Assembly: GCA_964199315.1 (NCBI GenBank)
Contig: OZ116699.1
Coordinates: 18,848,001-18,912,000 of the forward strand
DNA length: 64,000 bases
Origin: Orbicella franksi
Lineage: Eukaryota
Direction: 5' to 3'
In this document: positions 121 through 40,200 of the stretch, piece after piece
Numbering within the stretch: position 1 is the first letter of the stretch
Layout: each line of letters opens with the position of its first letter
The notes under the pieces: generated by a model
The model's input: the letters and a program-made list of their open reading frames with translations, nothing else
Database searches by the model: none
What the model was told of the DNA's origin: nothing
Made by a program: the position numbers and the translations under genes

Positions 121-408
121 CAACAACCTGAAGTGTGTAAGTGTGATTTATACTGCCATATGGATTGGACACTATGCAAATGTATTTTCCTGAGTCGTTG
201 GGCACTAGATTTTTCAGTTTTAGGTACCAAATGGACGTGTTAAGATATGGGTCCATCCTTCGGCTGGGCATTTTCATTCCGTCCTTTAACCATGTGTATT
301 TGAGAGGTGGCGCTCCAGTCGCTTGACACCTCAATCTGATCGAATGTGATGCTGGCCATGCTCTAAATGCTCTTTTTAACAGATTTGGATCAGAAAAGGT
401 TGGTGCTC
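121..408 (-). CDS. Gene C exon: duplicated FGFR-type Ig2 (D2) domain
   Basis: Acceptor AG at 410-409 and donor GTGAGT at 120. The 288 nt translate as GAPTFSDPNLLKRAFRAWPASHSIRLRCQATGAPPLKYTWLKDG...YTLQVV. Confidence 0.88.
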
Positions 409-3400
409 CTAAACAAAGGACACAGAAACAAAATAATTAAGACCAATAAGTATGATGTGTAGCTTGACTCTACTTCTACAATCTTGTAGACATGGCCAGT
501 TGCACAGGTGGCGCAAAAGCTTAATTTTCGTTATAATTCAAATTCATTGGAATGCCAAAGGAAAACCCGTGGTTAATAGTTTGCAAGTATTTACTTTATT
601 TATTAAGGACAAGTCATTGATTAATGCGGGTTATGACCACTCTTCATGTGATATTGCCTGTTTTGAAAATGAAATGTAATAACCTTGTGGGAAAAGAAGA
701 AATATGAGAAAGTTTTGACTGATTGTACAGATGTTCATATGAGAAGCGTTAGACGTCTAGTTTCCTCAGCACTCAGGAATTACGAAAGTTGGCAATGGAT
801 CACGGAGAGTATACTCGTTTTCATCTGAACATCGGAAGAAAACCGATATTGCTTTGGTTTCTTATTTCTACACTGTGCAATGACATGCAAACCCAAAGAG
901 GTTAATGGCGTAGAAACCTCAAGGTACTTTTAAATATAATTCTACATTATACATACCGAATTGGTGATCATATTCACTTTTACTGTATAGTAGGATATAT
1001 TGCAGAGATATATTGCAGAGATATTTTCAGTATCAGATTAATTTGAGTAATAATATTTGTACATACAAACCTTCAACGGGGGCGCTGGGTTTCCCATCTT
1101 TGCTAAGGAAAGCACTACTGTAATCCTCGCCGACATGATTGCTCACATAGCAAGTGTAGAGTCCCAAATCATCCTCTTTGACATTAGCTATTCTCAACTC
1201 AACGCCGTAATGGTCCTTGACTCGGATAATCTTGTAAAAATGTGGGTCTATAATGCGGTATGATCCGTTCTCCAAGTCTTCACTAATTTTCTTTGTTGAT
1301 GTGACAGATTTGTCCCATTTCAGCCATCTGAAATCTGGAAGTGTTCCACTAACAAGCACAATGCATGTCATTGTTGCATTATCTCCAATCTGTACGGTTG
1401 TATTCTTTGGAGAGCTTTTTTGTAAGATGGGCCGTGATCGTGGTTTAGCTGTCGAGAAGATGATGGAAATCTTTTTTAAAAAAGAATATTTCAGCTGTAA
1501 CAAGACCAAAACTGCCAGTGTTGCCTGGTGCGGAGACTCGGCAAATTGAATTATATATTTTACTTTACAACTAAAATCGTCTCACTTTTTCATTGTGAAT
1601 TGTCTTTTTGAACTAGATGTGCATAATTGTCTACGTTTGTGCTAAACTCACCAACAACCTGAAGCGTGTAAGTGTGATTTATACTGCCATATGGATTGGA
1701 CACTATGCAAGTGTATTTCCCTGAGTCGTCGGGCACTAGATTTTTCAGTTTTAGGTACCAAATGGACGTGCTAAGATATGGGTCCATCCTTTGGCTGGGC
1801 ATTTTCTTTCCGTCCTTTAGCCATGTGTATTTGAGAGGTGGCACTCCAGTCGCTTGACACTTCAATCTGATCGAGTGTGATACTGGCCATGCTCTAAATG
1901 CTCTTTTTAACATACTTGGTTGAGAAAAGGTTGGTGCTCCTAAACAAGGACACATAAACAGAATAAATATGACCAACATTTTTGTCTCAATGTTATGATG
2001 TGATAGACATAGTCTTGTGAACGTGCCATTCGTGTAGTTGGTACAAAAGCTGACTTTGAATTATAATTGATTGAAATGCCAAAGGAAAAACCTGTAGTTA
2101 ATAGTTTGGAAGTAATTACCTTATTTCTCTTGAAAAGTCATTTAGTATTGCGGTGATGATCACTTTACGAAAATCAAATGTAATAAATTTGTGGAAAGAG
2201 AAGAAATGGGAGAATTCAATGCAACTGAGAAGAGAGAGACATCTATACTTTCCCTTTCAGCAATCGGGAATTGCTATAGTTCTCAATGCAACATAACGAA
2301 TGTAGTAATTTTCACCAGAACGTCGGAAGTAATCCGAAATTGCTGTGGTTTTATCTCGACATGTTATCTGATTTTGTTACACTGTGCAATCAAATGGCAA
2401 ACGATAAAAAACGTTCATGGTCTAAAAAGATAACTTAAAGGTACATTTTACTATAATTCTGAAGCCCTTCCATCAAGTGCGTTCGAAATCAAACATGCAA
2501 AATTGTATTTTTCTTGGAAATTCCGTTTGCAATGCACCATATCTTGAGATATTGGTAGCCTGGCAATTCCTGACCTAAGTTATAGGAAATCGAGCTCGCA
2601 CAAAATGAAAGTTTTATCTGATTTTGGATTTTTTTCTTTACCGTTTCCATTAAAATATAGATTTTTCAAGAAGAAACCTTATGTAAAAATTCTGCCTAAG
2701 TCCAGTATCTTGTGCAATTTTGACAAGGGAGGAATGGGTAAAAGTTCAGGTTTGGCCCTGGGAGAACGGTTTTTTAAAAATATCTTAAAGGGATGATTCA
2801 CGGCTCAACGCATGTGGAAGCTATAACGTTAGCACCTTTTGAAGTGAGAGAGTGTCTGAAAGTTAAGAGTTAGCGTACTTACGTCTACTTTGCATCTGGA
2901 TAGCTGTGAAAAAAAGGTGGGTGGGGAAGAAGGTTTGATTTTAACCGCAAATCTTTCCATTCTTCTGAGTCCACACACATGCTACTCCGATTTTAGTTAC
3001 CTTTATTTACCTAATACACTCGGTCTTTTTGCAATGTCCAGGATAGCCAAGACATTGTTAGACATGATCGCTTTTGCATCCAATACGTGCCGTTTATTTA
3101 AAACTTTACAAAAAAGATTTTGGTGTGCTGATTACATTCGCGGCATTTAATTCGCTGACTCGTGCCCAGTTGTCTTCTCACATCTGCATCGACTGGGAAC
3201 GAGTAAGGGATTTTCGAATGGCATGGTAACTCCGGCATGGGTCAAACCTGACTCGAAGACAAGGGCGACACAGGGACTTGGGAGGGTACAACCATAAATC
3301 ATAACTTTTTTCAAACCAGTTGAAGTTGATGGGACGCCTTGGTCCCAGCGTCTAGAATTCTTTGAACAGAGGGGTAGTGTAGTCCAGCAGCCTTGCTGAA

Positions 3401-4419
3401 GAGATTTCAGTTGTCCTCTCGTGAGGTGCTGACCTTTGCACGCCATATAATGAATATTCAGGAATATTGTTTGCACAACTCAACATCCCAACATATCCGG
3501 CACCTCAAATGTACATGGTTAAGCTTTCAAATCGCTGGATGTCTTTCAAACGGAAGACATCGAAAGCATGGAAGTGAAAATGATTTCCATGAGCTCAGGT
3601 TGAGCGCAATTATTAACATTATCATTGATTATGAGTTTATTTATGGAAGCTAGAGCAGTATCACGCAACCCCTGAGGGAGGGGGGGGGGTACTCAGAAAA
3701 GTTGGGTAGGGGTGTGCGGCCCACATCCCAAAAACCTTACCCTATTTATGACCAAAATCTGCAATTTTTGCTACTTTGTTTATGACCTGGCCAAAAATTC
3801 GATACTCTATTTATTAACTTTGAAGCTGGCACAGTTGCCCTAAACATAATTTATGATGGGATTTTGTTGACGGTCCTATCGATAATGATGAAAAAATAAG
3901 TTCCTTCTAAGAAACATACTCAATTCAAGACTAGAGTGCTAAAACCAAACCCTATTTAAGACCAAAATGGCCAAAATCGATACCCTATTTATGACCGAAA
4001 CGACTGAAAAATCCTAATCTTTGGGGCCGCACATACCTATGTAGCTCATATAAGGGAGTACCCCCCCGGGCACGAAATAAACCCAAACCCAGATCTAATC
4101 AACCCAATTAAGGAATTTCCACAGGAAAATATTTCATTATACACTCTGCTTTACAGTGAAGCTATAACCTCAACCATAGAGTTATTTGCAACGCATATTT
4201 TGGGTTAAATCTTCGCTTTCATTTAGTTTTTCTTGCCTGAGCTGCGCAATCGTAACTTAATTCTGAGCGTTATATGACTTGAATCGCTTAAACAATCATG
4301 CGGAACTTTCATCTACGTTTATTACTTAAAGTTTCTCAGTGGTACTTGCCTGAATACACTATCGAAGAGAAGAACCCTATGAGTAGAAGCATCGCCAACA
4401 GTTTCATGCCGGGGTCCAT
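121..4419 (-). CDS. FGFRL1-like Ig-domain gene C (partial, runs off the left edge): signal exon 4419-4350, Ig2 1939-1652, Ig3 1448-1071, second Ig2 408-121
   Basis: All exons are open in frame with phase-1 junctions and AG acceptors; donors are GT except a GC donor after the leader. The Ig exons carry FGFR D2 (C-x-A-x-G-x-P...TWLKDG...DSGKYxC..SNPYGSINHTYTL) and D3 (RSRPIL...GDNATMTC...YTCYVSN) motifs. The 3-prime end lies outside the window. Confidence 0.82.
1071..1448 (-). CDS. Gene C exon: FGFR-type Ig3 (D3) domain
   Basis: Acceptor ...ctcgacAG at 1450-1449 and donor GTTTGT at 1070. The 378 nt translate as AKPRSRPILQKSSPKNTTVQIGDNATMTC...DLGLYTCYVSNHVGEDYSSAFLS... Confidence 0.88.
1652..1939 (-). 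CDS. Gene C exon: FGFR-type Ig2 (D2) domain
   Basis: Acceptor ...ccttgtttAG at 1941-1940 and donor GTGAGT at 1651. 288 nt, phase 1-1, with both Ig cysteines and the W of TWLKDG intact. Confidence 0.88.
3670..4070. mobile_element. MITE-like non-autonomous DNA element with CCC..GGG G/C-run termini (hAT-like by 8-bp TSD)
   Basis: Starts ccctgagggagggggggggtact and ends gagtacccccccggg. Flanks cacgcaac / cacgaaat look like a degenerate 8-bp TSD. The internal sequence is homologous to 58138-58483. Confidence 0.75.
4350..4419 (-). CDS. Gene C leader exon (signal peptide MDPGMKLLAMLLLIGFFSSIVYS) with GC donor
   Basis: The minus strand reads ATG GAC CCC GGC ATG AAA CTG TTG GCG ATG CTT CTA CTC ATA GGG TTC TTC TCT TCG ATA GTG TAT TCA G|GCAAGT. 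Phase 1 matches the Ig2 acceptor at 1939. A pyrimidine-rich acceptor at 4482-4481 defines the exon start at 4480. Confidence 0.72.
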
Positions 4420-7400
4420 CGTGCTTCGAGTCAACTTTGCGACTCTTCGACTCGTGTCTGTGTACTGGGGGTCTGGCAGGCTGCCCAAGAGTCAAAAGAA
4501 GGTCACAAGCGTGGGTCAAACTTAAAGGCCAGGCTTTATGCTTATTGGTCTATTTGCAGAATTCTCGAAAGGATCGTTAAGTTCATTAGCTTTAATAGCC
4601 TTATTTGCGATGTTATAGGATTTGTGACAACTTAAGGTAATTCCTCTGAAATAAAAGTGACAATAGATTTTTGTTCAAAGTTTGTCCACTGAATATTTGT
4701 CATATGATAACTTCAATTTTGAAATAAAAAAGGGAGGTGCCCATGCTCATTAATTAAGGAGCAGCGAGGCATTGAAAATGCCCCTTTTTGGCATTATTTA
4801 ATGCTTATTATAAGAACGCATTCCCAGTAATTGTAAAATCTTTGTGAGCCCAGACACATAAGAACACGCATTAAACTGCAGTCAATACATTGTGTCGGAC
4901 AGAAATAAACATTTAAGCTTAATTCAGACAGAAAGCTAAATCATTGATTAAAAATTTGAACCAAATTTCTTGACGTGGTTACCAAACTGCAAAATAGAAA
5001 AGACTACAGTGTATCTGCTATTTTTCTCATTTGTTCAATTTTCAGCAATAGAAATTAGATCAGTCTTTTCTCACGCAAAGCTTATGATTAGTTGATTACA
5101 ATGACTGGAAAAAAAATTGGGGTGCCTGGGCTCGTTGGTGAGCTAGAGCCATTTTTCAACTGACAGAGCTCAATATCAAGGCAAATCCGTGATGTTTTCA
5201 ATATGCGCGTGCACGAGCGCGCGCTAATGACGCCATAAATTATGCGCAGTAAGGATGCGCGATGCAAATGTGAGCAATGACCTTAACCAAAATATGGAGA
5301 CCACTGCCAACTGAAGATTTGCTTTGTCTAAATAGTATACGAGCTTTGGCCGTTATATTACAAAAGCATTCAACAGAGAATCACTTTTTTTGTCTCCTAT
5401 ACTTAGGTGCACAAGGTTGTAGCCTGGTGGTACTCAAGAACAGCCTGGGGAGGCAACGATTTCCTTTCACGCAAATCACACCTTCTAAGAAACGTCTTCC
5501 ATTCAACTTTGCTAAAACCTTTCCTTAGTGCAAAACCTCTGGTAAGTGAACGAGTGATAATCCAGAGATTCCTGGTTTACGCTTTATCAGTAATAATAAT
5601 ATGCCCCTCGGACCGGAAGACTCGCAGATACAACGCGACAGCTCAATGACGTACAAAATACTCCTGCACAAAGACATCGATTGCCCACTAATCTTTCCGC
5701 TTAACTCCACGATGGTTAAAAAATGGCCTAATAATACTTAGGGTATTAATGAGGAAGCGTTTCAGTGTCTTTTGGTCTGTGCAAGTGCAGTTGGGTGCCT
5801 CCACTAATACACATCCGTTCCTCATCCTCAAAACGGACACCAGGGGAAACCAACGTTTATTTCCAGTAGTTCAAGATAGCTAGGGACTGGATGTCTCGGC
5901 GAATCATCTAAGAGCATGTGAACTTTACTTTTAGTGGGTCACGCAAATAACTTATACCTATATTGACCAACTTTGCTATATATTTTATCCGCTAGATTGG
6001 GTACATTTACTGAATGAAGTAGACCGCCCATTGTTCCACGGCAGTTATTTGCAAGCTTAGTAAGTGTCAAGGAAAAGAAAACACTTTTTAGGTGACCTGT
6101 AAGTCCATCACTGACATCTCCTTTATTGTCGATCCGATTAAGACCAGCCTACCCACGAAATTAGAACACAAGAGTTTTTACTTTGAGTGTGATAACTAAT
6201 TCAAGAAATACTACGTCCTTATGCAGTCATTGCGCGCCAATGCGTTACGATACTTAATGAAATATGGTTAGGAAAAGAGCATTTGCCCCGAAGTTTCGGC
6301 CTTAAAGTACTAACGAAAGAACGACCTGTTCTCAGCCGAGAATTAGTATGTCGCGCGCGAGAAAATGTGCCCAGCGCTAAAACAGACATATTTCTCGGGC
6401 TCAAAAGTAAGAATGGCCACTTTTCTTTGAAACATGCTTACATATATCGTGGTAAAAGCCTGGAACAGACTATAGTCAACATAGGATGCAGCGTCTCGGT
6501 GGCCATTTTCTAATCTTCAAGAGAGTTATTTCATTTGCAAATTAAGAACTGAAAGAATCTAGCTGTTTCAGTAAAAGGAAATTCTTAATGAAACTTATAC
6601 ATAAAACCTGAATACACTTGTTTTTAATACTATCACCATTATGCACTCCTGCTGCGTACTTGAAAGGGAACTTTGCACCGGGGACACCAACGTGAACACT
6701 CGGCCATCAAGTTTCTATATTGCGTGAGAGGCAAACACAAGTAAAGACAATTTCGACACAACAATACACAATTATGGGTCTTTCAGCATTTGTATTGAAC
6801 CCTTGATACCCGGCCGTGGTGCGTTGTCCGTCACATTTCTTTTAAAGATGATTTGTTTTCAATTTTCATTTTTACTCGCGGCATTTGAAACGTTACTTTG
6901 TAGAAATAAGATCGATTCATGAAGATTTCGTATATTAGAAAACTAATAGGGTCTTTTTTCTCTAACTATACAATTGCAGTGGAGTTTTCGGCCACTAGGG
7001 AAATAAAAATTTTTCAGTTCACAACACTCCGAGACCGTTGCACTCATGTCGAGGATTGCACACTAGTGAGATCCATGCATGCTCTTTCTGATAAATACCT
7101 CAAATTGTTAGTAACAGGCTAGGTTACTCCATATTTCACGGAGAAGATTATGTGTGTTTTGATGACTTGTTTACGAATGAGGACACACCTGTATGTATCT
7201 TATTAACGTGCACACCTGGACATTTTTCTGAACTGTATTTATTTCTGAACTGACTTTCGCAACAACAAGACACTTTAACTCATGCTATATTTCCCGCAAA
7301 TGAAATGAAACTGAATTTTGCGCACCAACAAAGATTTCAAACTGGTCTGTGGTAGAAGGTACACCTTGAATTTGCGTTTTACGTCGTTGAAATTTTGGTT

Positions 7401-7812
7401 AGTTTTTATCCGCCAGCGCGGAACTGAATCAGGGAAGGGATTTTTCTATATATACACATTCATTTATCAGTAGTTTAGTTGTAAAAGGGCGAAAAGAAAA
7501 GAAATGTTATGATTTGCATGTTGTCCCAAATTCACGTCATTTAAAGTCGAACATACACTTTTAACACCGGCTTTAATAACCAGCAAAACAAAGTAGAACC
7601 GACTTCGGATATATAATTAAGACAATTCGAGATTAAATACACGATAGTTATACTTGTGCAAAAACAACCCTTCCATGGGCACGATCTACAACAACATCTG
7701 TAAGGTGTGGGCAGGTATAACTTGCCCAAACGTCAGGTTTTAACAGTGTCACATATGCTCATTCTTGTCCAACATTGCCGGTGATCGCCAGAAAGATGTA
7801 GTCCCTCATGCT

Positions 7813-8003
7813 TTACGAGATCTCTATTCCTGGCTTTGTCGCTGTGATTCTCTTATGATACAGATGGCACCAGAGAAGGGCGATTGTTGTAATGACAGCC
7901 CAGGTGCTCAGTACACCTATAAACACACTGAGCGGTATCTTGGCCTCTCGGGATCTAGATAACACAGGTTTAGGCGATGGGTTGTCCAATGTAACGTTGG
8001 TTT
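7813..8003 (-). CDS. Gene B terminal exon: juxtamembrane, TM helix and 14-aa cytoplasmic tail
   Basis: Acceptor ttttttaattgtttaatcgtcAG at 8005-8004. Translates as ETNVTLDNPSPKPVLSRSREAKIPLSVFIGVLSTWAVITTIALLWCHLYHKRITATKPGIEIS*. Not present in the supplied ORF track. Confidence 0.8.
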
Positions 8004-11000
8004 CTGACGATTAAACAATTAAAAAAAGAAAAAAATGTGAAGATTTAAATTAATGTTGTTCGTACTTTTTTACCACTTATGTCATATTGTGTTGTCATAA
8101 GAACCACCCAATATAAATCATTTTTCTGCGCGTCATTGAGTACACACCGATGACTGATCACACTGAGTGGAAAAAAGATCTTTATATAAAAACAAAACTC
8201 AGCGGAAAATATGGAAAGTCAATGATACTTCTTGGCGACAAAAAAAGTGCAATTCTGCCAAAACTGATGAGGCGGTGTGCTTGCCATTGTGCAGTTTGCT
8301 AAGCGGCATTAACTTTGAAACTTGCATTCTTGCGTCGTATGTTGTTACTTTTTCCGCAGTCCATGTAACAGAACATCGTGGACGATTTGGTCGCTTTGTC
8401 CTATCCAAGTTCTTTATTTTCGCTTTGTACCCCCATCACCAGTCCGGGATCTAGCTATGCTAAATCATACGCTGTGGTCACCTCAGAATTGAGATGACCG
8501 CGATATCATGGCGGGATGTTGCCTTTGCCATTTCTTCGGTTGTACCCGGGTCAACTACCTATAGTTTTGGATATTTGGACGAGAAAGGAGATTCGTGCGT
8601 TGCTAAGATGGCCGTCAAAGACAAACTATAAAGATGCAACTTTTAATCGCATCAAACTATGAAGTGACCAAAAATACAGCCAAATAGAGCTGAAAGAGAA
8701 ACCAAATCCATGTATAGGTTCATCTTACCTGTAGAAAGCGAGGATTCTGTGTTGTGATGTTTCGCGAGGTAGTTTTTCTCAGGATTTGCTGTCGTGTCTG
8801 AAAGCGACTCTGTCGATCAGTAATATTAAAAGGATTAAAACAGTAGTATGCATTTCACAAAGGTATAGACAAACGTGTGGGTCTTCCCTGGAATGGATAA
8901 CTGTCTTTTGTTCAAGGAATGTTGCACTGGTAAGATCTTTTGAAGAGAGCCGCTTTCCAATGAAAAATGTTTTTCTGCATCAAATCCAGAGGTTCGGGAT
9001 GCCACCCGACCTCGTACAAAATTCTCTAGAATTGATCATTACTCACAGCTAGTCTCTCTACCTACGTGTATAAGGGACCAGCGGAATGAGCTGTGCAACC
9101 TTAAAAAAACGACAATGATGTACATGCATATGCTACTTGTTATCGGTAGGTCCGTAATCATATATAAAAATGCACATATGAGAAATTCAATTAAAAAAAG
9201 CGCACTGAAATGTAGGACAAAACAAAGTATCGAAAGTCAGAAACAAACTTAAGTTTGTGAGCTAAATAGTTGCGATGAACTGAGTAGTGTAAGCCTACCT
9301 GATTGAAAAGCACATCGCAAAACAAAACAAATGTTTTAGCTACGCATTTTTATGTTTATTGTACTAAACTCTGCGTTAATTTGTTGTGGAATTTATTTTG
9401 TTTTATAAGCAGTTTGCGAAAGTGAAACTGAACGAAATGAGGCGGAATGGTTTCAAAAATTTGTTGCTGAAACGGAAACAGCTAATATTCATACAACGAC
9501 AAACTGCGATAAAACAAAACGTCTGAAGAGTTTCAACAAACATTAGGAGCTAGTTACGTTCACTGAATTTATCCAGACTGGGCAAGAAAATTTATAAATG
9601 AGAATGATACAGTTGTAAAACAAAAAGGTCTTTTGGTTGTGAAAGAAGGAGCATGAGAAATTTATTTGAACAAGGTGAACTATGTTTTCTTTGGCCCAGT
9701 AAACACACAAACGCCGAAAAAAAAAGAACCATTTCGTTTAGACCAAACTAGCACTTTTGTTATGTGATCAAGATATCTTTCTACATAGAGGGTCAAGGAA
9801 CCAAAGGAAAATTACTAATTGTGAACAGCTCTTTTTTTTATTTAAGTTGAGAACGATGATCAGGCGGCCATTTTGCTCATTCGAATACGATAAGACCGTG
9901 CATTACACGTCGATATATTTGGTCTTTCAACGTCATCAAATTGCTAAACAGGCAAAAATATGCGGATGCTCTAAAAGACCCTATCAATTCCTATTTAGTA
10001 ATGGCAGGCGATTTTTATCCAAAACTTAGAACTAGACATGCTTTTTATATTGTTTGCGTTGTTTTTCCGACACGTATTCTGTTACCTTAAACACGATTAA
10101 GACTACCCAGAAAGAAACTATTTAAAAGAACAGGAAGCGTCGAATCTAATTTCCTTTTAAATTAAGCTGTCTATGGCCGGCAAAAGGAGTTAATTAAAGG
10201 GATATAGGGGGACTAAGATATTTACAATACCTCAATGACTTCTGTCACTTTCGATTAACGGTGATGTTATTGCATACGTTGGGTTGGAATGCAATGTCGT
10301 ATCATGATTCCAAAAAAACAGACAAGCTCACTGAGATGAACTGAATTAAGACAACTTCGTTCAGATGAATAAAGAGTAAAACACGTTTTTTTCGTTAACT
10401 ACTGATTTAAGTAGTCGAACGATTCTATCGTTCTCACAAAACGCCCAAAGTTTAACGAACTGGATGTAGTTCTTACCTTCTGACCCTTTCCACCTGTCCG
10501 TTTTCTCGCTTAAAAACGCACTCCTGTAGTCGGAACCAAGATGGTTACTAACGTAACACGTATACGGTCCAAAATCTTTGGGTGTGGCGTTTCTGATGTT
10601 CACTTTAACGCCGTACTTTCCTGCAACGTGAACCGTTTCATATTGCGCAGGATCAACAAGGGTGTACGAACCTCTTTCAAAGTCAAGTGAATTGGGGTAC
10701 GTGCTGGGGACATCATCCCACTTTACCCATCTAAAATCTGGAAGTGTTCCACTGACAAGGACGATGCAAGTCATCGAAGCGTTTTGTCCAAGCTGGACGC
10801 TGGTGTTTCTTGGGGAACCGCACTTCAAAATGGGCTTACTTCGAGATTTTTCTGTGTAAGAGAGAAACGTAGAACGATTGTAGACAGTTTATATTAACTA
10901 GATTGGAAAGGTGAACGCTCTGTTGAACCAAAAAAATGAGTTGGTCAAGAAGCAATCAACTACCAATCAAGAATGAGGTTTTGAAACTTTACGATCATTG

Positions 11001-13527
11001 AAAATCGTTTCCCGGGATCCTATCGTTGCCTTGAGTGAATGAACGATGACACCCCACTACCCCACGGGCTTACCCAAAATAGTAAATTTTTTGGACCAAA
11101 AAACTGAGTAACTCAGATTTTATTCCAACGTATTTAAGCTACCAAACGGTTCTAATGGCAGAACCTTCGGCTCAGATGTAGCGTCCACGAATATAGTGGA
11201 ATTCGATAAAATGACGACTGTAGCTAAACCAGCAAGAAGCATGCAGAGATGTTTTCAAAGAGGTAGTGAACATTACTGTTCTGGTATAGAACGTCCGATT
11301 ATGTCAGTTCTACAGTTTATATTTATCGGTTCTAATTATTTTTCAACCCAGTGCCTAACTTGGCAATCTCATTTATCCAGTTCTTTTCCACAAATGTTTC
11401 GATGATATCAAGACTCTTGACTTACCACCAGGATATGAAACCGATGCATCAGTGCACTTTGTACTACTTTACTATCCTAGATCTGATAGCATTTCTCTTT
11501 CTTTATTCTCCGATTACTTACCTACAACTCGTAGTGTATAAGTATGATTGATTGAGCCATAGGCGTTGGAAACTACACACGTGTATTTGCCCGAGTCCAG
11601 GGGTACCAAATCTTTAAGTTTTAGGTACCACATGTTTGTCTTAAGCCTCGGCTGTAATCGCCTGTGTATGGAAGGATCTCCGTCTTTTAACCACTGGAAT
11701 CTCAAAGGACTTGAGCCATTGGCTTTGCACTTTAGTCTAACAGTGTGACGTGCTGGCCACGCAATGAACGTTTGTTGCATTCTGATGGAGTCCACAAATC
11801 TGGGAGAAGCTGCACACGAAGAAAGTTGAATCAGGTGAAAATCAACTGTGTGAAGGACGGAATCACGGCGATGAAAGAAAACGTCGCCTACCGTGCAGAG
11901 TAACAGTTGCGAAAACATAAAATAATACACATTTATTATATGGCGGTGTCTCACAAGGACTGGGAACTACCGAATTCACGAATTTGATTGGCTGAAACCG
12001 ATATTGACCGCGGTCTAGATTTTCCCATCTAGACCGACATCTAGACCGGTTTCATTTTGCGTTGAAAAAGTAGCAAACTAAAATACAAAAATGTTCATCA
12101 TTTTCTTTTATTTAATTCTCAATCATTTATGGAAGTGCCAAAAAGCCTGAGGACAAAAAAAAAAGTAAAGAGGACGAGCAAATTTCGGCAGGTTTAAGTT
12201 AAGCTCATCGCCGTTCGCAAGCGAAATCTCAGCAAACCAGTTACGGATTAGAGTTTTCTTCTTTGCCATATAATAAACATCTTATTAATCGAGCTAAGTC
12301 GATCTGTATGGGAGAATCTTGACCTCGGTCGTGTGTACAGACCTCACTGCGTTCGGTCTGTACTCACGTCCTCGGTCAAGATTCTCCCATACAGACCTCC
12401 AGCTCGGTTAATAAGAGCTAACTAATAACTAGGAATTTGCCCCTCGTCCTCTGTCACTGTATGGTTACATCCCCTTTAACTAAGTCTGTCAGCACCGAAA
12501 ACGTAACGTAAAAGAAATGAGACAAAACAAAAGACAGAGTCGACGAACAACCAGAGCAATAGGAGCATTAGCAACGACGAGGGCAACGCCGAAGACGACG
12601 CCATGTCAAAAATTAAATTATATTTTACCAGCGAAATTCGCAACTATCTAGTTTAGTACGCCGATGGCTCTAAAAACGTCCTCAGGCTAAATATGCAATG
12701 ACAGCGTTCACTTCTAAATGGAAACACGAAAAATTAGCCGTCGTCGTTCGCGTTCCTCAGACTACGCAAACCTTAGTCATTTCACGTTCTTGATTTGCAG
12801 AGGACGGCAAAGAAATGTACAAAGATTTATGAGGCACGTGCACAGCTATTGTTTTGCTCATTAAGCCTTTTGTTTGGTGGCGATCTCGTTGCCGTCCTCG
12901 TCGCGGTTTGCTTAAGTTCCCTATGAGTGACTTACGAAAACGGGAGGTAGGCTTGGCAATACAACTTCGATTGTTATAGTTTGAAACTCCTTTCTAAATT
13001 TCAACCAGTTTGTCAGAAGCGGGAATTCTTTTTTTTCCACGACAGCTACTCTCTTATCTAATTTCCTAACGGCATGATTGATTCAATGACTGTGGGAATG
13101 TAACTGGGATTGGAGTGCCCCAAAACTGAAGTAAAGCAACGTAAAGCTTATCTCTCGAATGCACCTTCTCGTGCGTTGTACAATTCTGGGCGCTACACTC
13201 TGTTGATTATTCCGTCTACGACTGAAACGACATCGTGAAATGAGCAAATTTTGTATTATCTGGAGAACTGAACCGAGGCAGTAAATTTTCATTGACTTTA
13301 TTTCTCCGTGAACGCCGTTTCTCCATTTTAGCTGTCTACATTAAGATTAGCTGTTTGCGTTAAGATACAAACTGAGCTGTAATAGATTTCAAAGGCAGTG
13401 TAGGATAAGCAAGATATACAATATTTTTCCACTCCCTAATAACTAGACCAACCTTGAGCATCTCCAGAATTCGTGTTTGAAGAAGATGACGACGTTGTTG
13501 ACATGTAACTCATCGACGTAGAGCTCC
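7813..13527 (-). CDS. FGFRL1-like Ig-domain receptor gene B (leader exon not located): S/T-rich exon 13527-13453, Ig2 11809-11522, Ig3 10851-10477, stalk 8809-8729, TM plus short tail 8003-7813
   Basis: Five exons, all with phase-1 junctions and open frames. The terminal exon encodes TM IPLSVFIGVLSTWAVITTIALLWCHLY, similar to the gene A TM IPLAALIGVPIAVLILLIGTIVWCYFM, then stops. No kinase domain. Confidence 0.8.
8729..8809 (-). CDS. Gene B stalk exon (27 codons)
   Basis: Acceptor ...atattactgatcgacAG at 8811-8810 and donor GTAAGA at 8728. 81 nt, phase 1-1, open: ESLSDTTANPEKNYLAKHHNTESSLST. Confidence 0.68.
10477..10851 (-). CDS. Gene B exon: FGFR-type Ig3 domain
   Basis: Acceptor tttctctcttacacAG and donor GTAAGA at 10476. 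375 nt: EKSRSKPILKCGSPRNTSVQLGQNASMTC...DFGPYTCYVSNHLG. Confidence 0.88.
11522..11809 (-). CDS. Gene B exon: FGFR-type Ig2 domain
   Basis: Acceptor ctttcttcgtgtgcAG and donor GTAAGT at 11521. 288 nt: ASPRFVDSIRMQQTFIAWPARHTVRLKCKANGSSPLRFQWLKDG...DSGKYTCVVSNAYGSINHTYTLRVV. Confidence 0.88.
11955..12420. mobile_element. Non-autonomous repeat element ending in a long internal hairpin (MITE-like)
   Basis: 12280-12420 is an imperfect palindrome (ttattaatcgagct..ctgtatgggagaatcttgacc...ggtcaagattctcccatacag..agctcggttaataag). The architecture resembles 33581-33855. Confidence 0.6.
12560..12923. mobile_element. MITE with TAGG(G)AG..GCAACGACGA-type TIRs
   Basis: Starts taggagcattagcaacgacgagggcaacg and ends cgttgccgtcctcgtcgcggtttgcttaagttcccta. 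A second, inverted copy lies at 49578-49941. Confidence 0.75.
13453..13527 (-). CDS. Probable gene B Ser/Thr-rich exon upstream of Ig2
   Basis: Acceptor gtttctgttcttgatcttcAG and donor GTTGGT. 75 nt, phase 1-1, open: GSSTSMSYMSTTSSSSNTNSGDAQ. Confidence 0.55.
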
Positions 13528-16500
13528 CTGAAGATCAAGAACAGAAACCTATGAGTTGGCAATGCATACACATGCGACTATTTTCATGTTAACATCATAA
13601 TATAAATGAAAGCAATTCTCTTTTAAAGTGATTTGTTGATAGGTTGACAGACTAATACATGAAAATGGGGCCAATCTGTAACTTGGTTGCGGTGAAATGG
13701 ACGGTTTCGTTGGGAAATAGCTTGGTCGTTCATTTTAACTTTGTCCGCAAATAAATCAAAAAACGCTTCTGCTTAGATTTCTCTCCTAGTTTTAGATCAT
13801 CGCAGTTACGGTATTTAAGGCACTGGAGGTATACATTGAATAGGTAGGCATTCACTTTAACACTTTCATTGGAGTACGCGAAAGCCCAGAATACTGATTC
13901 AGAGAACGCAAACCTCTTTCAGATCACAGCCAAGTGAAAGGTTACAACCTTGGGCGGATGTCGTTATCTCCGTAACAATGGTCAGTCCCTGTATGTTCGT
14001 AAGACGTACCATAACGATTTCTGTTTGGTTAATTTGAATAGGGTACTAAAACGTACACTCAGGAACGGGCATATTACTCTGGCATGGTTTGGCGGGATTG
14101 CTCGTGTCATCTTTCTTACGACGCAAATGGACTTGGGAGCATTCGTGAATGGAGCTTTTACATGTAATTGAGAGTTGATTACACGGGAACAAAGGAGCTA
14201 TTGAAAAGAGGCTGGAAATTGATAAATAATGTGTCTGAGGATTTCAGTTGATAACAAGAGCTCTTTTGTATCCTGTCAAATGAACAGCCGGGTTTATAAC
14301 ATTCCCTGACGCAAGTTCTATTGAGTAAGGACCACGATTGAGTTGGGTCGCTTATAAGGTGTACGAAGAGCGAGATGTATCGTCTAGCAAATAAATCTAG
14401 ATAGGCTACATTTCTTAAGGGTTTTGCTTATTACAATAAAATTCGTGCAAATTTAGTGCCATCTCCCATTTTCAATCAACGGGATTTTTTACAGATTAAC
14501 TTTATTTCGCCGTCAGTCCCAAATAAAACGATTATGGACGTTCCCGAATGATACCATTAGAACCTGTATTATTTTTTCGTTTCACAGGAAGCAGTACTCA
14601 CTCCTATGTTACATCTGATATTTCTTATGAACTGCCACAATGTATCACTTTCGCTTCAAGGCATTAATTTTAGGTTATTTCGGGAAACAAGTGTTTCAAA
14701 TCTGAAACAACACAAGATAATACGAAGAAATGTTATCACTGCTAATGCGACATCTTGACGCTGGGAAACATAGATTAAAAGACTGATGCTGTACTCGGTC
14801 AAAATTTTTATGTTTGATAAAACTGGCCATGTCAGTTTCAGTCGCATTAACGGCTTGTTGGTGGAAACGTGTACCGCTTACATTGTTCCGCGACCAGTGA
14901 AGACTAGTCTTTCTCAAGTGAAGTGTAAAACTTTGCAAAAGGTCAGAAAATTGGTCAACATCTTTTTGAGAGTTACGTATTGCCACTTTAGTTCTGAACA
15001 ACTGTGTAATGCCTTATAAGGAATGAAACCTAAAAGTTAAACAGTGTTTCCATCATCGAGAAATACAAGTTCATCGCGAACTTTGACTGACGTACAATCT
15101 TTTGCACTGACAGAACTTTCCGGTATTTGGCAAACGGCTGGCAAGTCGCGTGCCATTATAGGAATAATTGTGTGGCAGGCACGTGTGAACATTACAAAGC
15201 GATCTCTTGATTTTCATGTCGTCGAACCGAAATTGTACACGAGATTGATTGTCGTCAAAGGATCATCCTCTTGTGGAAAACCACAGACTATTAAGCGGGC
15301 TGATTCTAGCAGTCGTCACGGCGTAAGTAACAAGCAGACTTAACATTTTTTTTGACACAGTGTTGATCTAACCGTTATTGTTTTGGTCGAAGACAGGCCT
15401 GAAGTTAATGTTGACAGGGTGTGCAAAACAATCCGGTTTGAAGTATCCTTTACGGAAATTAAAGGGCAAAGGACTTGGACAAATTAAGATCGTAGTGGGG
15501 TCGTTATATATGAGTGCATTTCTTCACTATTCTCAGCTGATGTCGTTTTCGTAGTTACAATTTGTAAGTTCAGGAATTCCAACATAGTACGAAACAGTTA
15601 AACAGGCTGCGATTTGGGAAAGGAAGCTGTCAGGTTTTGTTGAGAAAAATTTCACGCCCCTCATCATATGTTCCCCTGCTGATTCCAATCTAACATTTAT
15701 CCCTGACGTAGTTAATTTGGTTCTAGATCTTTCGTTCATCTCGTAAAGGGGCAGTATATCACAACGCCTTTGGTAAGCGCTGAAGAATTATAAAGAGATG
15801 AGAAAAAAAGCTAGTGAACCTCTTTTTCGCGCAGCAACTTATTCGATGATATTTATATTTGTTCTTCACCGATGGTCTGTTTCGGGCGTCGAATATAAAC
15901 TACTTTGGGCAAATGTTCTTGTTGCATGATGAGGATGAAAGCAAGACATGTTTTTTCCCTTTATGGTAAACATATTTTGACACTAAAAGAACAGCATGTT
16001 CCCACCAGGATAACAAAATACAGACCGTGAGATGGGAGGTGTGAGCACCTTTGCCGGGTACCGATCGTGCTCCTACGCCACCCGAATTACGGTAACATTG
16101 ACACTTTGTACCAGTGCCAGAAAAACAACTCATCACACCCGCGGTTCTATTCGCCGAGTACTTATTTTTTCGTTTGCAAAATATTTAAAGTAAAGGGAAG
16201 TTTTTCACCCATTGGCAGTTGAATCGCACGCACCTCCCTGGCGCAATAAGGACAGAAATTAGGAACATCCGCCTCATACTGAGAACCATCGCCCGAGGGA
16301 GGGTGTCTAAATATTATTACTTCTTTGATACTGTGATGCAGTTAGCGAAAGACAGAGTAAACACAAAGCAATCTAAATTATTTATTCTTGTCGTACCTGC
16401 CGCATCCGTCGTGATTTGCATCGCTAATGTACATGCAGCGAAAACGACTCTCCAATCAGCCCTTTGCCTCATGTTGTGCACCTCACCTTGATGGCAACTT

Positions 16501-17695
16501 TGCTGCCTTATCTTTACTCCAGCTCCGTAACGCGTTTATGTTTTTAAAGTTTTCTGCAGCTTGTTTGTATTAGAATTGACGCGCTGCAGCCAGAAGTGCG
16601 ACCAGATATCGTGCGGGCTGGCGCCAGACGGCGGAACCTTGATGTTTTATCAGGAAGGAAGTTATCTGTGTTACAAGCTCATTCCTTGGCACTGGAATGG
16701 TTAAGATCTCTCAACTTCCTAATGTTTGACAAGGCTTTCCTATTTTAGGTCACCTGAAGAGCGCCCATACAAGTACACGGTTTCTGAAAGGCCAGAAATG
16801 TTCGTTCCACGTATTGACGTAATCTTCCACAACCTGCAGGTTAAATACCGTTGGTCATATTTACAAACAGGGGATTCAAGGGGTAAACTGTTGAGATAAA
16901 TGAAATCTTGTGTTTAGTTTCCAGCTGTCTGCTTACCGTCTTGGCTAATTTCAAAGGTCTGTTATCTTGCTCAAAATAAGTTATTTCTCACGCGAGTGTT
17001 GTCATTGCCCTTGTGCTTACTGGGAAAATCAGGCTCGAGTTTTGCACCTGATTTTGTTGAAAACAACGAAACTGTTTTGTAATAGATCGCGTATTTGGAG
17101 GCCTGCTGGGAGAGGGTATTATTGCCCTAAGCCTAATTTGCGGATGTCTTATGCTTTCTACCTATCGTTTCAGGTAAACGGCTGGTAACTAGATCTTCAG
17201 ATATCACAGCGTCCAGTTCCGATGCAGACTAAATTTTAGCCTGTTGGGTGCGCAATCGATAAAGGAAACGTAGCTATCAGATCAGCTTAACTATCGACTG
17301 GAAGGGATTACTTTGTCCTGACGAAAGCAGGCGAAAGCTTTCAAGTGGACGAGTTTTCTAATGGATTCTTTCGTCGAAAAGAAACGGAAGAAGCAGTTGA
17401 ATTTCTGGACAATGACACGCACATTGCTGTGAGCAGCTTGAATTATCATCCTTGCTTACTCATCCCACTATTGTTTTATATAACTAAACAAAACCTGTAG
17501 GAAGCATTGTTAGGAGGCTTTCTTCTTCACTCAGTTAAATTACTTGACCTTCAATTTAGTCCTTAGCCCATGGTTGACCATGGATCATGACATTAAGGAA
17601 AAAAACGGGATGAACTCTTTTAAACATGCCCCAGTTTTAAGAGCGATTTTACATAAGGATACCAACAGACTTCCAACATCCCATTGACTCTGGAA

Positions 17696-17753
17696 CCTGG
17701 GGGGGGGGGGGGGTACTTTGGGAATTTCTGGGTGGGGATGTGCCGCTGGGACC

Positions 17754-17784
<31 letters not shown>

Positions 17785-17973
17785 CAGCTGAATTTTGCTA
17801 ACCTATACAAGAGTGAACTCCCCAAATCCCCCCATCTATCGACACTGTTGAGGCTGATTTGCGTAAATTTAAACTTGCCGATTTGATTTATATATATTTT
17901 TGAGTGGCACTTCCTGGTTTCCTTACTCTAGATAAAATCTTCAACCACCGGCCAGTTTTGTGAAAAATGATAT

Positions 17974-18012
<39 letters not shown>

Positions 18013-24100: not shown

Positions 24101-24481
24101 GGCACCAATCCCCACACGATCGCGCTCTCCCTGTCTTACCTTAGCTCTAAACTGTAGTGGTAAAAAGAAGCCGAAAAATTATCCAAATTATTGGCTTAAA
24201 TTTTTATTTTCTCTGTCATAAACCACCTCCATTCCATCTCAAGTTTTAACTTGACTCCTGATCAGTTCTTGACGTGCTTTCTGTTTGCTTAGGGATTGAA
24301 AATAAAGATAAGATTAACTTATTTTCTCTTCCAGTTGACGACTTGTCACGTTATAAAGAGCAGGTACCATTAGTGATTTAAGAAATAAAACCTTTTAGGC
24401 TATCTTTACAAAACGAGGAGGTCGCCTTATTGGCATTGTTGCTGTCAGTAAGAGGGTTCTCGTTACTCTAGCACTCACATA

Positions 24482-24841
24482 GGGCTGCCACAGATCAGGA
24501 AAATTGGTCGGGAAAAAAATTGTCAAGGTCAGGCAAAAATCAAGGAATTTTATTTTGAGTCAGGGAAAATTGAAATAGTTTAACACGGCTGATTTGCTGC
24601 TATTGAGAGCTGGAGGAAACATGTGAGGTCACTGTGATCTCAACGATGTGTTTCCCAGATAGACAAGGAAAATTTGTTAAAAACTTATCAGTTTGACATG
24701 AATGGGTGGAGATGACGGCTGCAAGGGGAAGCTTGAGGACGCTACTATATGTGACTTTTTGTATTCATTTAGTCAGGGAAAAGTTATTTTTATCAGAGAA
24801 TATTCACGGAATTTTGAAAAGTGATGCCTGAGGCTACCATG
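24482..24841. mobile_element. Degenerate MITE with (C)AGGG.TGCCAC / G.GGC.ACCATG-like termini
   Basis: Starts catagggctgccac, carries repeated gtcagggaaaa subterminal motifs, and ends gaggctaccatg. Confidence 0.45.
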
Positions 24842-37204: not shown

Positions 37205-40200
37205 TCTTCGACCAAGGGCTTTTCCGTCCACAATCAAGCACAGCTGCGCCCCGCGGTCCTTCCAAGTCCAAAGGCTGTCGAAAAATAACAAAGAGACACG
37301 GCGGCAGGTTAATAAATTTCTATGCATATATGAATGAAGCTATCGATTGCCCGGTACACTGACCTTGCAAGTAAGCTAGCCACTTACAGCAAGAGGTATT
37401 CATCAGTTGGCTTTTCATCAGAAGGGGGCTTAGACAGAAACATCTCACTCGCTTGCCAGTGCACCACAGGGTAGAATATTAGCATACGTTTTTCAAAGGT
37501 CGGATCGATTTTACATTCTTTAACATCTGCTTAAACTCCCTCCCAATATCATTTGCAAAAGCTACCATTTAAATTCATTAAAAACACAGCGGAGGAGACG
37601 TTAGGTTAATGCTTCTTACGCTTGCAATTCCAAGAGATTTGTGTCCACTGTTATTTGTATACCTTGATGTCGGTGTAAACATTCTAAAGAGAAGAAATTT
37701 AAAACCGATTTGCCGAACACTCTTGGCGATTCTAATGCACACTCGCTTTTCAAAACGACCAATAGAATTAATCCTGTAGTTGTCAACGAAACCCTTTCTG
37801 GAACAAAAATAAAAGTAGCCCATATCGGTTTTTTGAGAGAGGCCTTTGCAGGTAATGGCAGACGGACAAGAAGCGGGGGTCCAGTTTCATGCAATGACTG
37901 TGCCAAAAGTGTGGATATATTCAGCAGGATGAGGAAATTCTAACTCATTGAAGAGCAAATTCAGGTGTAATCCGGCCTATGATACCAAGGAGGCCGAAGT
38001 AATAAATCAACTTAACTCGTGCTTTCAACATGGAATAATGGGTCACAGGTTGTGAAACGAAACTTCTCGATGTATGGAAACCGGAGAAGCACTTCACAGC
38101 AAGACAGAATTGGAAAAACAATCGGCAAAACGTCCCAGTGACGGCTGGCGAGTTTGTCTTCGAAACTGATTTCAAAAGAATATTACTAAATTCTGTAATA
38201 GTCACTACACGTGTAAATTATGACGTTCAGGTGTCGCCGGTAATAATCAAGGCGCAGTCATCAATCATTTCACGTTACTCTGCCACTTTGAAGAAAGCTT
38301 TCACATACAAATGAAAAATGTCCTGTTGAAATTTTGGGTCCAACAAGACATGCTAAACAATCGCGACCAGTCGGAACATACATTCACCTGCAGTGCCTAA
38401 CAGCAATCAAACAATCCACAACACCGAAGCCTGCTATGGCTAACGACGAAGTAAAAACACCCCGGCTGCCTGTGCTTCCCAGACAAATTCGAGCTGCTAT
38501 GGTTTAACTATGGTATTTCAATCCGTGTTTGACCCGAGAGCACCGCCTACAGGACGGATATCCGAACAAGCCACACATCATCAATACTTACGCAGTGTTC
38601 AAGCTTGAGAGATCGGCAGCCAAGTGTCCCTTTATGCTGATCAGATCGCACAATAAAGAGAAAAGCTCGTAATGCCCAGGATTTCACTGTCCAACCGAGA
38701 ATTCATTTCGCTCGAGGCAAGGCAAGGCGCATGCCAATCAGTCGGACAATTACTGCCTGTCAAGTCACCGATTACAGCACAAAGATAACCTATTGTTTCC
38801 AAACAGTTCCCAGCTCAAGTGAAAAGGCGGTCTTTACGCAAGCTGTTTTCCTTTCCTTGACGACTCTGTCCTTACGTTCGTGGATGCCACATCTAAATAA
38901 ATAAGACGCTCGACGTCAAATTGCAAGATTACTGCGAGTGTAGGAGATCGTTTAAGCCATTCTCGTGCATTCGTGGCCACATATCGAGCGGCTTAAATGT
39001 CACATAGACAGATTCAGCGGAAGCCGCTGAATACAGTGCAGGTAAAGCGAAGCCACAGCCTTCTCGCTATCGCGAATGGTCGTCTGGAGGTCAAATCAGA
39101 TGCTGTACGGATGATGTGGCGAAAGTGAATTACACTAAGGGGAGATCGATAAGGAAAGTGTCGATCTCGCGGATTAGCGTCTGTGCAATTTTCCACAAGG
39201 CGAGTGATGCGTCAAAATGTAAAATGAGCGATTGTTGACTGAAACCCAATCCGCTAGAACCTTTCTCTGTTCATGTATACACAAATATTTGATTTGAATT
39301 AGAAAATACTTACACATTGGACAGCCAATCAGCGAGAACCGAGACCGGCGCGAATTAATTGACTTAATTGCAAATGTCCATAAAGCACAAATCTTTTCGT
39401 CTGATGTGTACCGCTTGTTCACCTCGCGAACTGCTCAGAGATTATCATCTCGATTTTTATCGCGATACAGTTTGAAGATTTCTTCGATGTTTTCATCACG
39501 ATTTCAAAACAATGTCTCGCGGGCTTGGCCCACCAAGGGAACAAATGCGCGCTGACGGTGATGTAATAAATTGTTCAGCTGTTCATTACTTTAGCTCAGT
39601 ACGGAAATTTGTTTACGATAGGGTAGATTCCAACCAGTGATTTGATCACAAAAGAAATGATTCCTACACGATTTTGTCTATTTTTTAAGTAATGAAATGA
39701 GAACCGCCTTTAACTTTTGCCATTGTCAATCTTTTGGCTCGTTATAAAACCTGTGCTCTGCCTGAGTTTCTCTGGAAATGGAACGCGGCGTCAGAAATTT
39801 ATCCCTTTGTTTTTCATCTTTCATCGAAGAATCAATGAATGTTAAGAAGGCAGCAAAGACATGAGATTAAAAATTAAGAACAAACGAAAACCTCTCGACC
39901 AAAAATAACCCTATCGGGTATGAATACATTCTTTTATTAGCTTGACTGAGAATTCCAATCGCAAAAAATATCTAAAAAGAAATAACATACTTTTCGAGTA
40001 ATTTTGGACCCTTTGCCACGCAGGAAAGAATCAAAATAGACAACAAAATTAAAACGCCGAAATAACTGCTTACTCTTATTTTGTCTAGAGCAGGTGAAAA
40101 CACGACAGGGGGGGAATTCTGGACCCTTCAATGCTAAAAGATGATGAACTATAAATTCCGTGCCGCTAACAAAGATAACAGAAACATATCTCTACCTACC

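Follow-up and report, generated by a model that had tools for sequence, protein, structure and literature searches.

The 64,000-nucleotide window analyzed here, a stretch of a stony-coral chromosome (Orbicella franksi), probably represents the upstream portion of a cluster of FGFR genes in tandem, in which gene A is conserved with the organization of FGFRL1 and genes B and C are kinase-less copies from the lineage of a kinase-bearing neighbor, FGFRk1 (Table 1). As the original prediction had proposed, the window contains three same-strand gene units built from homologous phase-1 Ig exons. These exons are in phase 1 at both ends and bounded by canonical AG/GT sites. On the minus strand the units run in the order A, B, C and are followed beyond the window by two kinase-bearing FGFR genes, which lie on that strand 20-44 kb further downstream. 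All Ig exons matched Pfam I-set/Ig_3, and phmmer searches against PDB placed D2 and D3 colinear with D2 and D3 of FGFR1-4 as single full-length stretches. No kinase motifs were detected within the window (the nearest are outside it, at window coordinates -23356..-25894 and -41055..-43753), and the TM exons of A, B, and C each carry a stop codon; the description of all three as kinase-less and FGFR-like was correct. That the family is locally expanded was supported and understated, as it also includes the two nearby kinase-bearing genes and three further Ig2-Ig3 modules 245 kb away.

Table 1 Features of the cluster in window coordinates (negative values lie left of the window; FGFRk1 is given on the chromosome). 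SP, signal peptide.
Feature	Position	Strand	Details or basis
Gene A, whole	37204-26843	(-)	SP-Ig1-(S/T box)-Ig2-Ig3-TM-141-aa tail
Gene A exon 1, coding part	37138..37204	(-)	ATG 37204, signal peptide MRFVKTVSLEFILFLFAVVHCK, phase-1 donor; DNA kept in L033:720-785
Gene A Ig1 exon	32362..32655	(-)	Phase 1-1; Pfam I-set, E 1.3e-11; dN/dS 0.13
Gene A S/T-rich box exon SNNSTVRSPPITKPTST	32067..32120	(-)	54 nt, phase 1-1; predicted by splice-site scan
Gene A Ig2 (D2) exon	29988..30278	(-)	FGFR3 D2 residues 120-214, single stretch, 64 bits (phmmer, PDB); dN/dS 0.16
Gene A Ig3 (D3), single exon	28973..29359	(-)	FGFR4/FGFR2 D3, single stretch, E 1e-13; dN/dS 0.11
Gene A last exon	26843..27468	(-)	Stalk, TM, 141-aa tail, stop
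Gene B, whole	16472-7813	(-)	SP-Ig2-Ig3-S/T stalk-TM-14-aa tail
Gene B first coding exon	16397..16472	(-)	MRQRADWRVVFAACTLAMQITTDAA + G, signal peptide, phase-1 donor; 4.6 kb upstream
Gene B Ig2 (D2) exon	11522..11809	(-)	dN/dS 0.03 vs L029
Gene B Ig3 (D3) exon	10477..10851	(-)	dN/dS 0.19 vs L029
Gene B S/T-rich stalk exon ESLSDTTANPEKNYLAKHHNTESSLST	8729..8809	(-)	Phase 1-1; canonical splice sites, short match L029:1236-1259
Gene B TM exon, 14-aa tail HLYHKRITATKPGIEIS, stop	7813..8003	(-)	Aligns to ORF end in L029
Gene C Ig2, copy C1	1652..1939	(-)	Phase-1 acceptor at 1939
Gene C Ig3, copy C1	1071..1448	(-)	100% identical to copy C3 outside window
Gene C Ig2, copy C2	121..408	(-)	Spliced to preceding Ig3
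Gene C off-window Ig2	-814..-1101	(-)	Sequence
Gene C off-window Ig3	-1305..-1682	(-)	Sequence
Gene C off-window Ig2	-2345..-2632	(-)	Sequence
Gene C off-window Ig3	-2836..-3213	(-)	Sequence
Gene C off-window stalk exon	-3571..-3633	(-)	Sequence
Gene C off-window TM + 44-aa tail + stop	-3735..-3970	(-)	Sequence
FGFRk1, kinase-bearing FGFR, nearer neighbor	C2:18.822-18.828 Mb	(-)	Kinase motifs

Of the phylogeny that had been suggested as a check, an unrooted tree confined to FGFR-like genes of this genome was obtained; in it, B, C, and the distant modules (r185) grouped with FGFRk1 and apart from A with support of 100/98, and A was sister to the FGFRk1/B/C clade (90/90) when set against the remaining FGFR-like genes. 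The Ig2-intron-Ig3 unit of gene C is an 86% DNA copy of that of FGFRk1, intron included, with 88%/79% amino acid identity in D2-D3. This grouping, together with the copied cassette, supports an origin of B and C as truncated derivatives of the kinase receptor lineage and not as copies of FGFRL1. Both genes share the D2-D3 domains, exon phases, strand, and cluster of FGFRk1 but lack its Ig1, its S/T linker, and all its kinase exons, and their last exons, one for each gene, encode a TM segment and a tail of 14 or 44 amino acids; the TM exon of gene C gave no DNA match to that of FGFRk1 and is not a recent copy of it.

Gene B had been described as an S/T exon followed by Ig2, Ig3, a stalk, and a TM segment with a 14-aa tail. 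This order was retained from Ig2 onward, but what the first coding exon specifies is a signal peptide: this exon aligns to a spliced orthologue transcript (L029:196-556), in which it is joined directly to Ig2, and no S/T exon lies between the signal peptide and Ig2 in that transcript. L029 is a spliced Logan contig from a relative with ~82% nucleotide identity, not from O. franksi, and its 335-aa ORF encodes SP-Ig2-Ig3-stalk-TM-tail, so that the junctions of gene B are seen in the RNA of an orthologue. The first exon is also conserved in another coral locus, L033:20434-20508, 10 kb downstream of the gene A orthologue, and the order of A then B is kept there. Comparisons between species gave dN/dS values of 0.03-0.19 for A and B, indicating strong purifying selection on both. 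Gene B would represent a paralogue from the FGFRk1 lineage that is conserved, has two Ig domains, and is without D1, linker, or kinase, and it might serve as a membrane-bound ligand trap or, alternatively, as a dominant-negative partner of the adjoining kinase receptors.

FGF signaling shapes larval and polyp development in cnidarians, and FGFRL1 is a poorly understood member of this pathway. Truncated FGFRs, engineered or natural, act as dominant negatives or decoys; examples are "XFD", a truncated form of Xenopus FGFR1, and the soluble isoforms of FGFRs. Gene B resembles them in presenting D2-D3 on a membrane anchor with the kinase absent; it differs from them in being a separate conserved gene, neither a splice form nor a construct, with a putative action. 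B and C provide specific candidates for naturally occurring receptors of dominant-negative or decoy type, and a gene of FGFRL1 organization beside kinase-bearing FGFRs and their truncated copies suggests that partial duplication gives rise to kinase-less receptors, and has done so on more than one occasion.

Gene C differs from the SP-Ig2-Ig3-Ig2 structure first proposed. The unit comprises seven Ig exons (Ig2-Ig3-Ig2-Ig2-Ig3-Ig2-Ig3), followed by one exon for the stalk and one for the TM segment and tail, and extends to C2:18844030, 4 kb left of the window; because the array contains repeats that are 98.6% identical, the assembly may misstate how many copies there are. The proposed signal peptide was rejected, as it coincides with the polypyrimidine tract of the phase-1 acceptor at 1939, and an acceptor of this kind precedes every Ig2 copy; no 5' exon or signal peptide of gene C was found. 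An in-frame ATG at 1979, within the pyrimidine tract upstream of the C1 Ig2 exon, is a possible, putative start codon. Against PDB (phmmer), the Ig2 of gene C matched residues 152-248 of FGFR1 (E 2.5e-28) and its Ig3 matched residues 106-208 of FGFR4, both as single full-length stretches. Among the best 30 Foldseek matches of Ig2 in Swiss-Prot, 29 were D2 of FGFR or FGFRL1, and rank 27 was the Caenorhabditis elegans cam-1 receptor.

In the polyA run X29, depth over gene C was confined to exons, including the C1 Ig3, and a joint 408/1071, whose shorter side is only 25 letters, coincided exactly with the donor predicted at 1071 and the acceptor predicted at 408, with GT..AG ends. A JGI RNA contig (L037) joins Ig3 to the start of Ig2 at the same type of junction; splicing of Ig3 to Ig2 was thus seen twice. 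The same contig is unspliced from 2138 through the C1 Ig2 exon, with the intron retained, and this exon showed no depth in X29. Raw reads of a sister species (polyA run X22) contained none from gene C. A paralogous transcript, L030, ends in a homologous TM/short tail and a stop codon. At least some of the gene C Ig exons would be spliced serially before their own stalk and TM/short-tail exons.

Gene C would be a younger partial copy of the FGFRk1 lineage, in which unequal crossing-over would have multiplied the D2-D3 exon cassette until there were seven symmetrical exons. Between the young copies, Ig2 exons differ by 3.1% and noncoding DNA by 1.0% (p = 0.002), but the differences sit at both ends of the 2.1-kb duplicate, with four in its 1.55-kb core, and such clustering at the duplication ends is the pattern left by unequal crossing-over. 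As dN/dS among the copies is 0.3-0.96, gene C could be a transcribed but decaying copy. It is possible, though doubtful, that gene C is nonfunctional and, like the similar modules lying 245 kb away, is an array of recent segmental duplications, from which exon fragments are transcribed and spliced incidentally; the missing 5' exon and signal peptide, these dN/dS values, the loss of Ig3 from one unit, the intron retained in L037, and the absence of reads in X22 all fit this explanation. By contrast, the stalk and TM exons and all seven Ig exons are open with canonical splice sites; divergence from FGFRk1 is two to four times lower in the exons than in the intron (6-15% without indels versus 23% with four indels); polyA RNA depth is limited to exons; and a transcript from the paralogous array has a complete ORF end. 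Returning to a functional gene C, a speculative and rather unlikely extension is that its product is a membrane protein in which FGFR D2 and D3 domains alternate, up to seven in all, the phase-1 cassettes being either all included (a multivalent FGF/heparan-sulfate trap) or variously combined (a set of ectodomains from one locus), and that, next to every one of the genome's three kinase-FGFR lineages, kinase-less copies seemingly arose. If true, the latter would point to recurrent tuning of coral FGF signaling. The repeated D2-D3 array of gene C, if translated, would be an FGFR-family architecture for which full-text literature searches found no description.

In Nematostella vectensis and vertebrates, FGFRL1 (FGFR5) has three Ig domains behind a signal peptide, with an inter-Ig box, and then a TM segment and a short tail lacking a kinase; in Nematostella and human, it is encoded by six exons, with one Ig domain per exon, TM and tail in the last, and all junctions in phase 1, and the gene is linked chromosomally to FGFR genes (Bertrand et al. 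2009, PMC2754479). Gene A shares all of these features, including the signal peptide, three Ig domains, TM segment, and kinase-free tail, six phase-1 exons with TM/tail last, and FGFR linkage, provided that its predicted box exon is counted. The SP-Ig1-Ig2-Ig3-TM architecture with a tail of ~141 aa was borne out, and the gene probably contains in addition a 54-nt S/T box exon that had been missed; this exon corresponds to exon 3 of the published organization (PMC2754479), and the colinear position in L033:6150-6200 shows 76% conservation. Orthologous loci in other corals carry all exons of gene A (dN/dS 0.11-0.16), with identities of 95% (L033) and 61% (L032) for Ig1 and 96% and 77% for Ig3. 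All of the best 30 Foldseek matches of Ig2 in Swiss-Prot were D2 of FGFR or FGFRL1, and Ig3 matched residues 111-213 of FGFR4 (phmmer against PDB). The last exon has 26 homologous clusters (99-44% identity) and carries the invariant motifs ...IVWCYFMTRK in the TM segment, TRNVSFNVYVD, PPLDGL, SNRTNHRKRHERE, and, at the C-terminus, KCSGV, which is PDZ-ligand-like (S-x-V). The four tail motifs presumably differ from the His-rich/tyrosine motif of vertebrate FGFRL1, and the conservation of this motif-rich tail speaks against FGFRL1-like proteins acting purely as decoys. Gene A would be an old, conserved kinase-less three-Ig receptor that binds FGF and/or heparan sulfate through D2-D3 and acts via adaptor or PDZ contacts instead of phosphorylation.

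The label "FGFRL1-type", originally given to all three genes, was retained for gene A by organization and withdrawn for B and C, which group with the kinase-bearing FGFRk1 and would fall outside the FGFRL1 family by descent. Lack of a tyrosine kinase domain and a short intracellular tail are common to A, B, and C, whereas the six-exon organization with its conserved, predicted box exon was found in A and not in B (two Ig domains, no box) or C (seven Ig exons). We consider it very unlikely that the three genes are all paralogues from a local expansion of FGFRL1, an explanation that would agree with their single-exon, phase-1 D2 and D3 and missing kinase, with the joining of A to the B/C/FGFRk1 clade, and with the D2 of gene C being 46-48% identical to vertebrate FGFRL1 D2 versus 33-38% to FGFR1-4. 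The B/C clade, however, holds a gene with kinase motifs, from which the cassette of gene C was copied; the local kinase-bearing FGFRs also have a single-exon D3, so that this feature cannot separate the families; and identity to FGFRL1 exceeds that to FGFR both in A and in the FGFRk1-derived D2 of C, which makes it nondiscriminating and no evidence for FGFRL1 descent. Only gene A, being apart from the FGFRk1 group, is a candidate FGFRL1 orthologue, on the grounds of exon organization.

The further suggestion of an Alr-like cell-recognition locus under diversifying selection is scarcely credible: the cluster does resemble Hydractinia Alr in its tandem cnidarian genes of varied architecture for Ig-domain single-pass membrane proteins, and the Ig2 exon excess in young C copies could be read in this way, but the domains are FGFR-type I-set D2/D3 and not of Alr type, A and B are conserved between species, the differences in C are explained by duplication breakpoints, and exons showed few variant letters across runs, with no hypervariability seen in the cluster. 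The TM segments of A and B, which had been called clearly related, show some resemblance, at only 26% identity over 31 residues.

Every feature of the kinase-less receptor cluster lies on the minus strand, in a genome of 497 Mb. Stop-to-stop frames and a splice-site scan showed that the Ig exons are phase 1 at both ends, with AG acceptors and GT donors, and Pfam assigned an I-set or Ig_3 domain to each. When the best single-stretch, full-length matches to solved structures were taken, gene C Ig2 aligned with residues 152-248 of FGFR1 D2 (E 2.5e-28), C Ig3 with residues 106-208 of FGFR4 D3, gene A Ig2 with residues 120-214 of FGFR3 D2, and A Ig3 with FGFR4/FGFR2 D3; the matched domains stand in the correct D2-D3 order. 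Titin and contactin outscored FGFR only through summed weak matches of many domains. AlphaFold models of the D2 exons of A and C reached pLDDT values of 87 and 82, and the best 30 Foldseek matches of each were FGFR or FGFRL1 D2, except for one cam-1 in the list for C. The single-stretch matches and the Foldseek lists thus confirm the FGFR-like ectodomain proposed in the original prediction. The length-limited word-index protein searches returned mostly single-exon ORFs of genomic contigs, with neither full-length gene models of A, B, and C nor an FGFRL1 sequence; the only named matches, both from stony corals, were "Fibroblast growth factor receptor 4 [Desmophyllum pertusum]" (85% identity) and [quoted passage not shown] (59-71%). 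The sequencing runs containing this DNA likewise carry coral labels. An exhaustive search with the Ig2 profile retrieved only giant multi-Ig proteins that scored by many-domain sums, and no FGFR or FGFRL1 references.

Judged from its sequence, gene A is an FGFRL1-organised gene. FGFRL1 of Nematostella and human has six exons (signal peptide, Ig1, box, Ig2, Ig3, and TM plus tail), all phase 1, and is linked to FGFR genes (PMC2754479, Bertrand et al.); A has the same exon organisation, including a predicted box exon, and its joined exons encode 571 aa. The exons occur in the same order at two orthologous loci in other coral assemblies, with identities of 95% (Ig1), 76% (box), 94% (Ig2), 96% (Ig3), and 84% (tail) at L033 and 61% (Ig1), 65% (Ig2), 77% (Ig3), and 54% (tail) at L032; dN/dS was 0.11-0.16 with L033 as the reference. 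Homologues of the last exon were found in 26 protein clusters (99-44% identity), which share an invariant TM segment, TRNVSFNVYVD, PPLDGL, SNRTNHRKRHERE, and a C-terminal KCSGV. A search of the ESM Atlas with the tail gave only generic single-pass membrane proteins; the tail may have an adaptor signalling role. The A D2 shared 33-39% identity with the D2 of vertebrate FGFRL1 and 26-32% with that of FGFR1-4. The D2 of C, which comes from the kinase-receptor lineage and served as a control, was even closer to FGFRL1 (46-48%, vs 33-38% to FGFR1-4); D2 identity therefore does not discriminate FGFRL1 from FGFR and was rejected as a criterion. A remains a candidate FGFRL1 orthologue by its gene organisation only.

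Coordinates of the receptor exons and neighbouring features (window positions; negative values lie left of the window; C2 denotes the contig)
Feature	Position	Strand	Remark
A signal peptide exon	37204-37138	minus	
A Ig1 exon	32655-32362	minus	
A S/T box exon	32120-32067	minus	predicted, 54 nt
A Ig2 exon	30278-29988	minus	
A Ig3 exon	29359-28973	minus	
A TM + tail exon	27468-26843	minus	
B signal peptide exon	16472-16397	minus	intact
B Ig2 exon	11809-11522	minus	intact
B Ig3 exon	10851-10477	minus	intact
B S/T stalk exon	8809-8729	minus	intact
B TM + 14-aa tail exon	8003-7813	minus	intact
L029 alignment blocks	16752-16395; 11813-11524; 10852-10480; 8797-8774; 7950-7815		8797-8774 is a short match
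C stalk exon	-3571..-3633	minus	
C TM exon + 44-aa tail + stop	-3735..-3970	minus	
Three distant Ig2-Ig3 modules	C2:18.594-18.605 Mb		5022-bp period
ADP-ribosylglycohydrolase gene, two exons	51269-59094	minus	Pfam PF03747, E 2.6e-25 and 5.5e-18
301-aa ORF	starts 59207	opposite to ADP-ribosylglycohydrolase gene	no Pfam match

Gene B, a kinase-less paralogue with two Ig domains, is conserved. L029, a Logan contig (SRR26945551) of a relative at about 82% nucleotide identity, aligned to the window in separate blocks and is therefore a spliced transcript; its 335-aa ORF contains a signal peptide, Ig2, Ig3, an S/T stalk, a TM segment, and a 14-aa tail. The S/T exon originally placed ahead of Ig2 is absent from this orthologue transcript. 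The dN/dS values were 0.03 for Ig2 and 0.19 for Ig3. The first exon of B is also present in L033, 10 kb downstream of the A orthologue, and the A-to-B order is thus conserved.

We extended the sequence of gene C leftwards past the window and located its exons by tblastn, which revealed seven Ig exons from 1939 to -3213 in the order Ig2, Ig3, Ig2, Ig2, Ig3, Ig2, Ig3, followed by stalk and TM exons; all of these are open, with canonical splice sites. The pyrimidine tract of a phase-1 acceptor (tgtccttgtttag/GAGCAC at 1939) underlies the segment initially read as the signal peptide of C (MLVIFILFMCPCLG), and the same acceptor stands ahead of all the Ig2 copies. One unit of the array, between Ig2 copies C2 and C3, has no Ig3 exon, leaving two Ig2 exons adjacent near -118 (C2:18847882). 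A joint from 834 to 1412 in run X26 fits reads from this paralogous Ig2-Ig2 boundary and supports the assembly at that point.

In the polyA run X29, whose source organism also provided the DNA runs closest to the window, depth on C was limited to the Ig3 exon (1071-1448) and an Ig2 exon (121-408), with a joint at exactly 1071/408 that has GT..AG ends; the Ig2 of the first copy had no depth in this run. L037, a JGI RNA contig, joins the same Ig3 donor to an Ig2 start and retains the Ig2-Ig3 intron. The X29 joint and the L037 junction together show that the C modules are spliced in series. The stretch of L037 from 2138 is unspliced, consistent either with a retained intron or with the originally predicted ATG at 1979. 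The raw polyA data of X22, a run from a sister species, contained no C reads. The "RNA" runs X25 and X26 covered introns evenly, resembling DNA or pre-mRNA, and were excluded as expression evidence. C is a cassette array that was amplified recently; it is transcribed and spliced, and is a candidate protein-coding gene.

The C copies differed at 18 of 576 positions in the Ig2 exons and at 11 of 1142 non-coding positions (p = 0.002). Positive or diversifying selection on these young copies was rejected because the differences cluster at both ends of the 2.1-kb duplicate, with only four in its 1.55-kb core. Such clustering is the trace left when unequal crossing-over takes place between Ig2 exons.

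Kinase motifs (GxGxxG, HRDLAARN, and DFG) were found only left of the window. There they follow, on the downstream side, two more sets of Ig2/Ig3 exons on the same strand, one at -21 kb (FGFRk1) and one at -39 kb (FGFRk2). The Ig2-intron-Ig3 unit of C matched that of FGFRk1 with 86% DNA identity, intron included; the exons differed by 6-15% without indels and the intron by 23% with four indels, and this lower divergence of the exons indicates past constraint on them. A recent origin of the C TM exon from that of FGFRk1 was rejected, as the two lack DNA similarity. FGFRk1-type signal peptide, Ig1, and linker exons were absent from the 6 kb upstream of C and from the 24 kb upstream of the distant array of three modules, which has a homologous stalk and TM/short-tail exon. 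A JGI transcript of the distant array, L030, reads linker-Ig2-Ig3-stalk-TM-stop. It is colinear with the genome for 3.9 kb beyond the stop codon, and positions 3101-4105 hold a 334-aa 7TM GPCR ORF on the same strand; this stretch may reflect read-through or an extended 3' region.

A tree of Ig2+Ig3 grouped B, its orthologue, C, and the distant modules with FGFRk1 (100/98 support), placed A and its orthologues as sister to this clade (90/90 support), and contained two further FGFR-like clades from elsewhere in the genome. Six more tandem FGFR-like Ig1/Ig2/Ig3 units lie at C2:16.26-16.34 Mb (L020-L028), with kinase motifs in the last only, and no such motif lies less than 10 kb from a single unit at C13:17.85 Mb (L018-L019). 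The kinase-less units at both places have very short branches beside kinase-bearing genes, which suggests that each of three FGFR lineages may have given rise to kinase-less copies independently. The three-gene cluster is confirmed, with a larger extent and more structure than first described. Its receptors could function as ligand traps or in a dominant-negative manner. In the literature searched, expansions of kinase-less FGFRs in corals were not described.

Between B and C, contig depth was very high (1000-4800) at 3660-4059 and 4460-5459 in all three Logan RNA runs. These segments contain many variant letters and irregular joints, are partly copied elsewhere in the genome, and, like the rest of the window, have no Rfam match; expressed repeats or remnants of transposons are the probable explanation.
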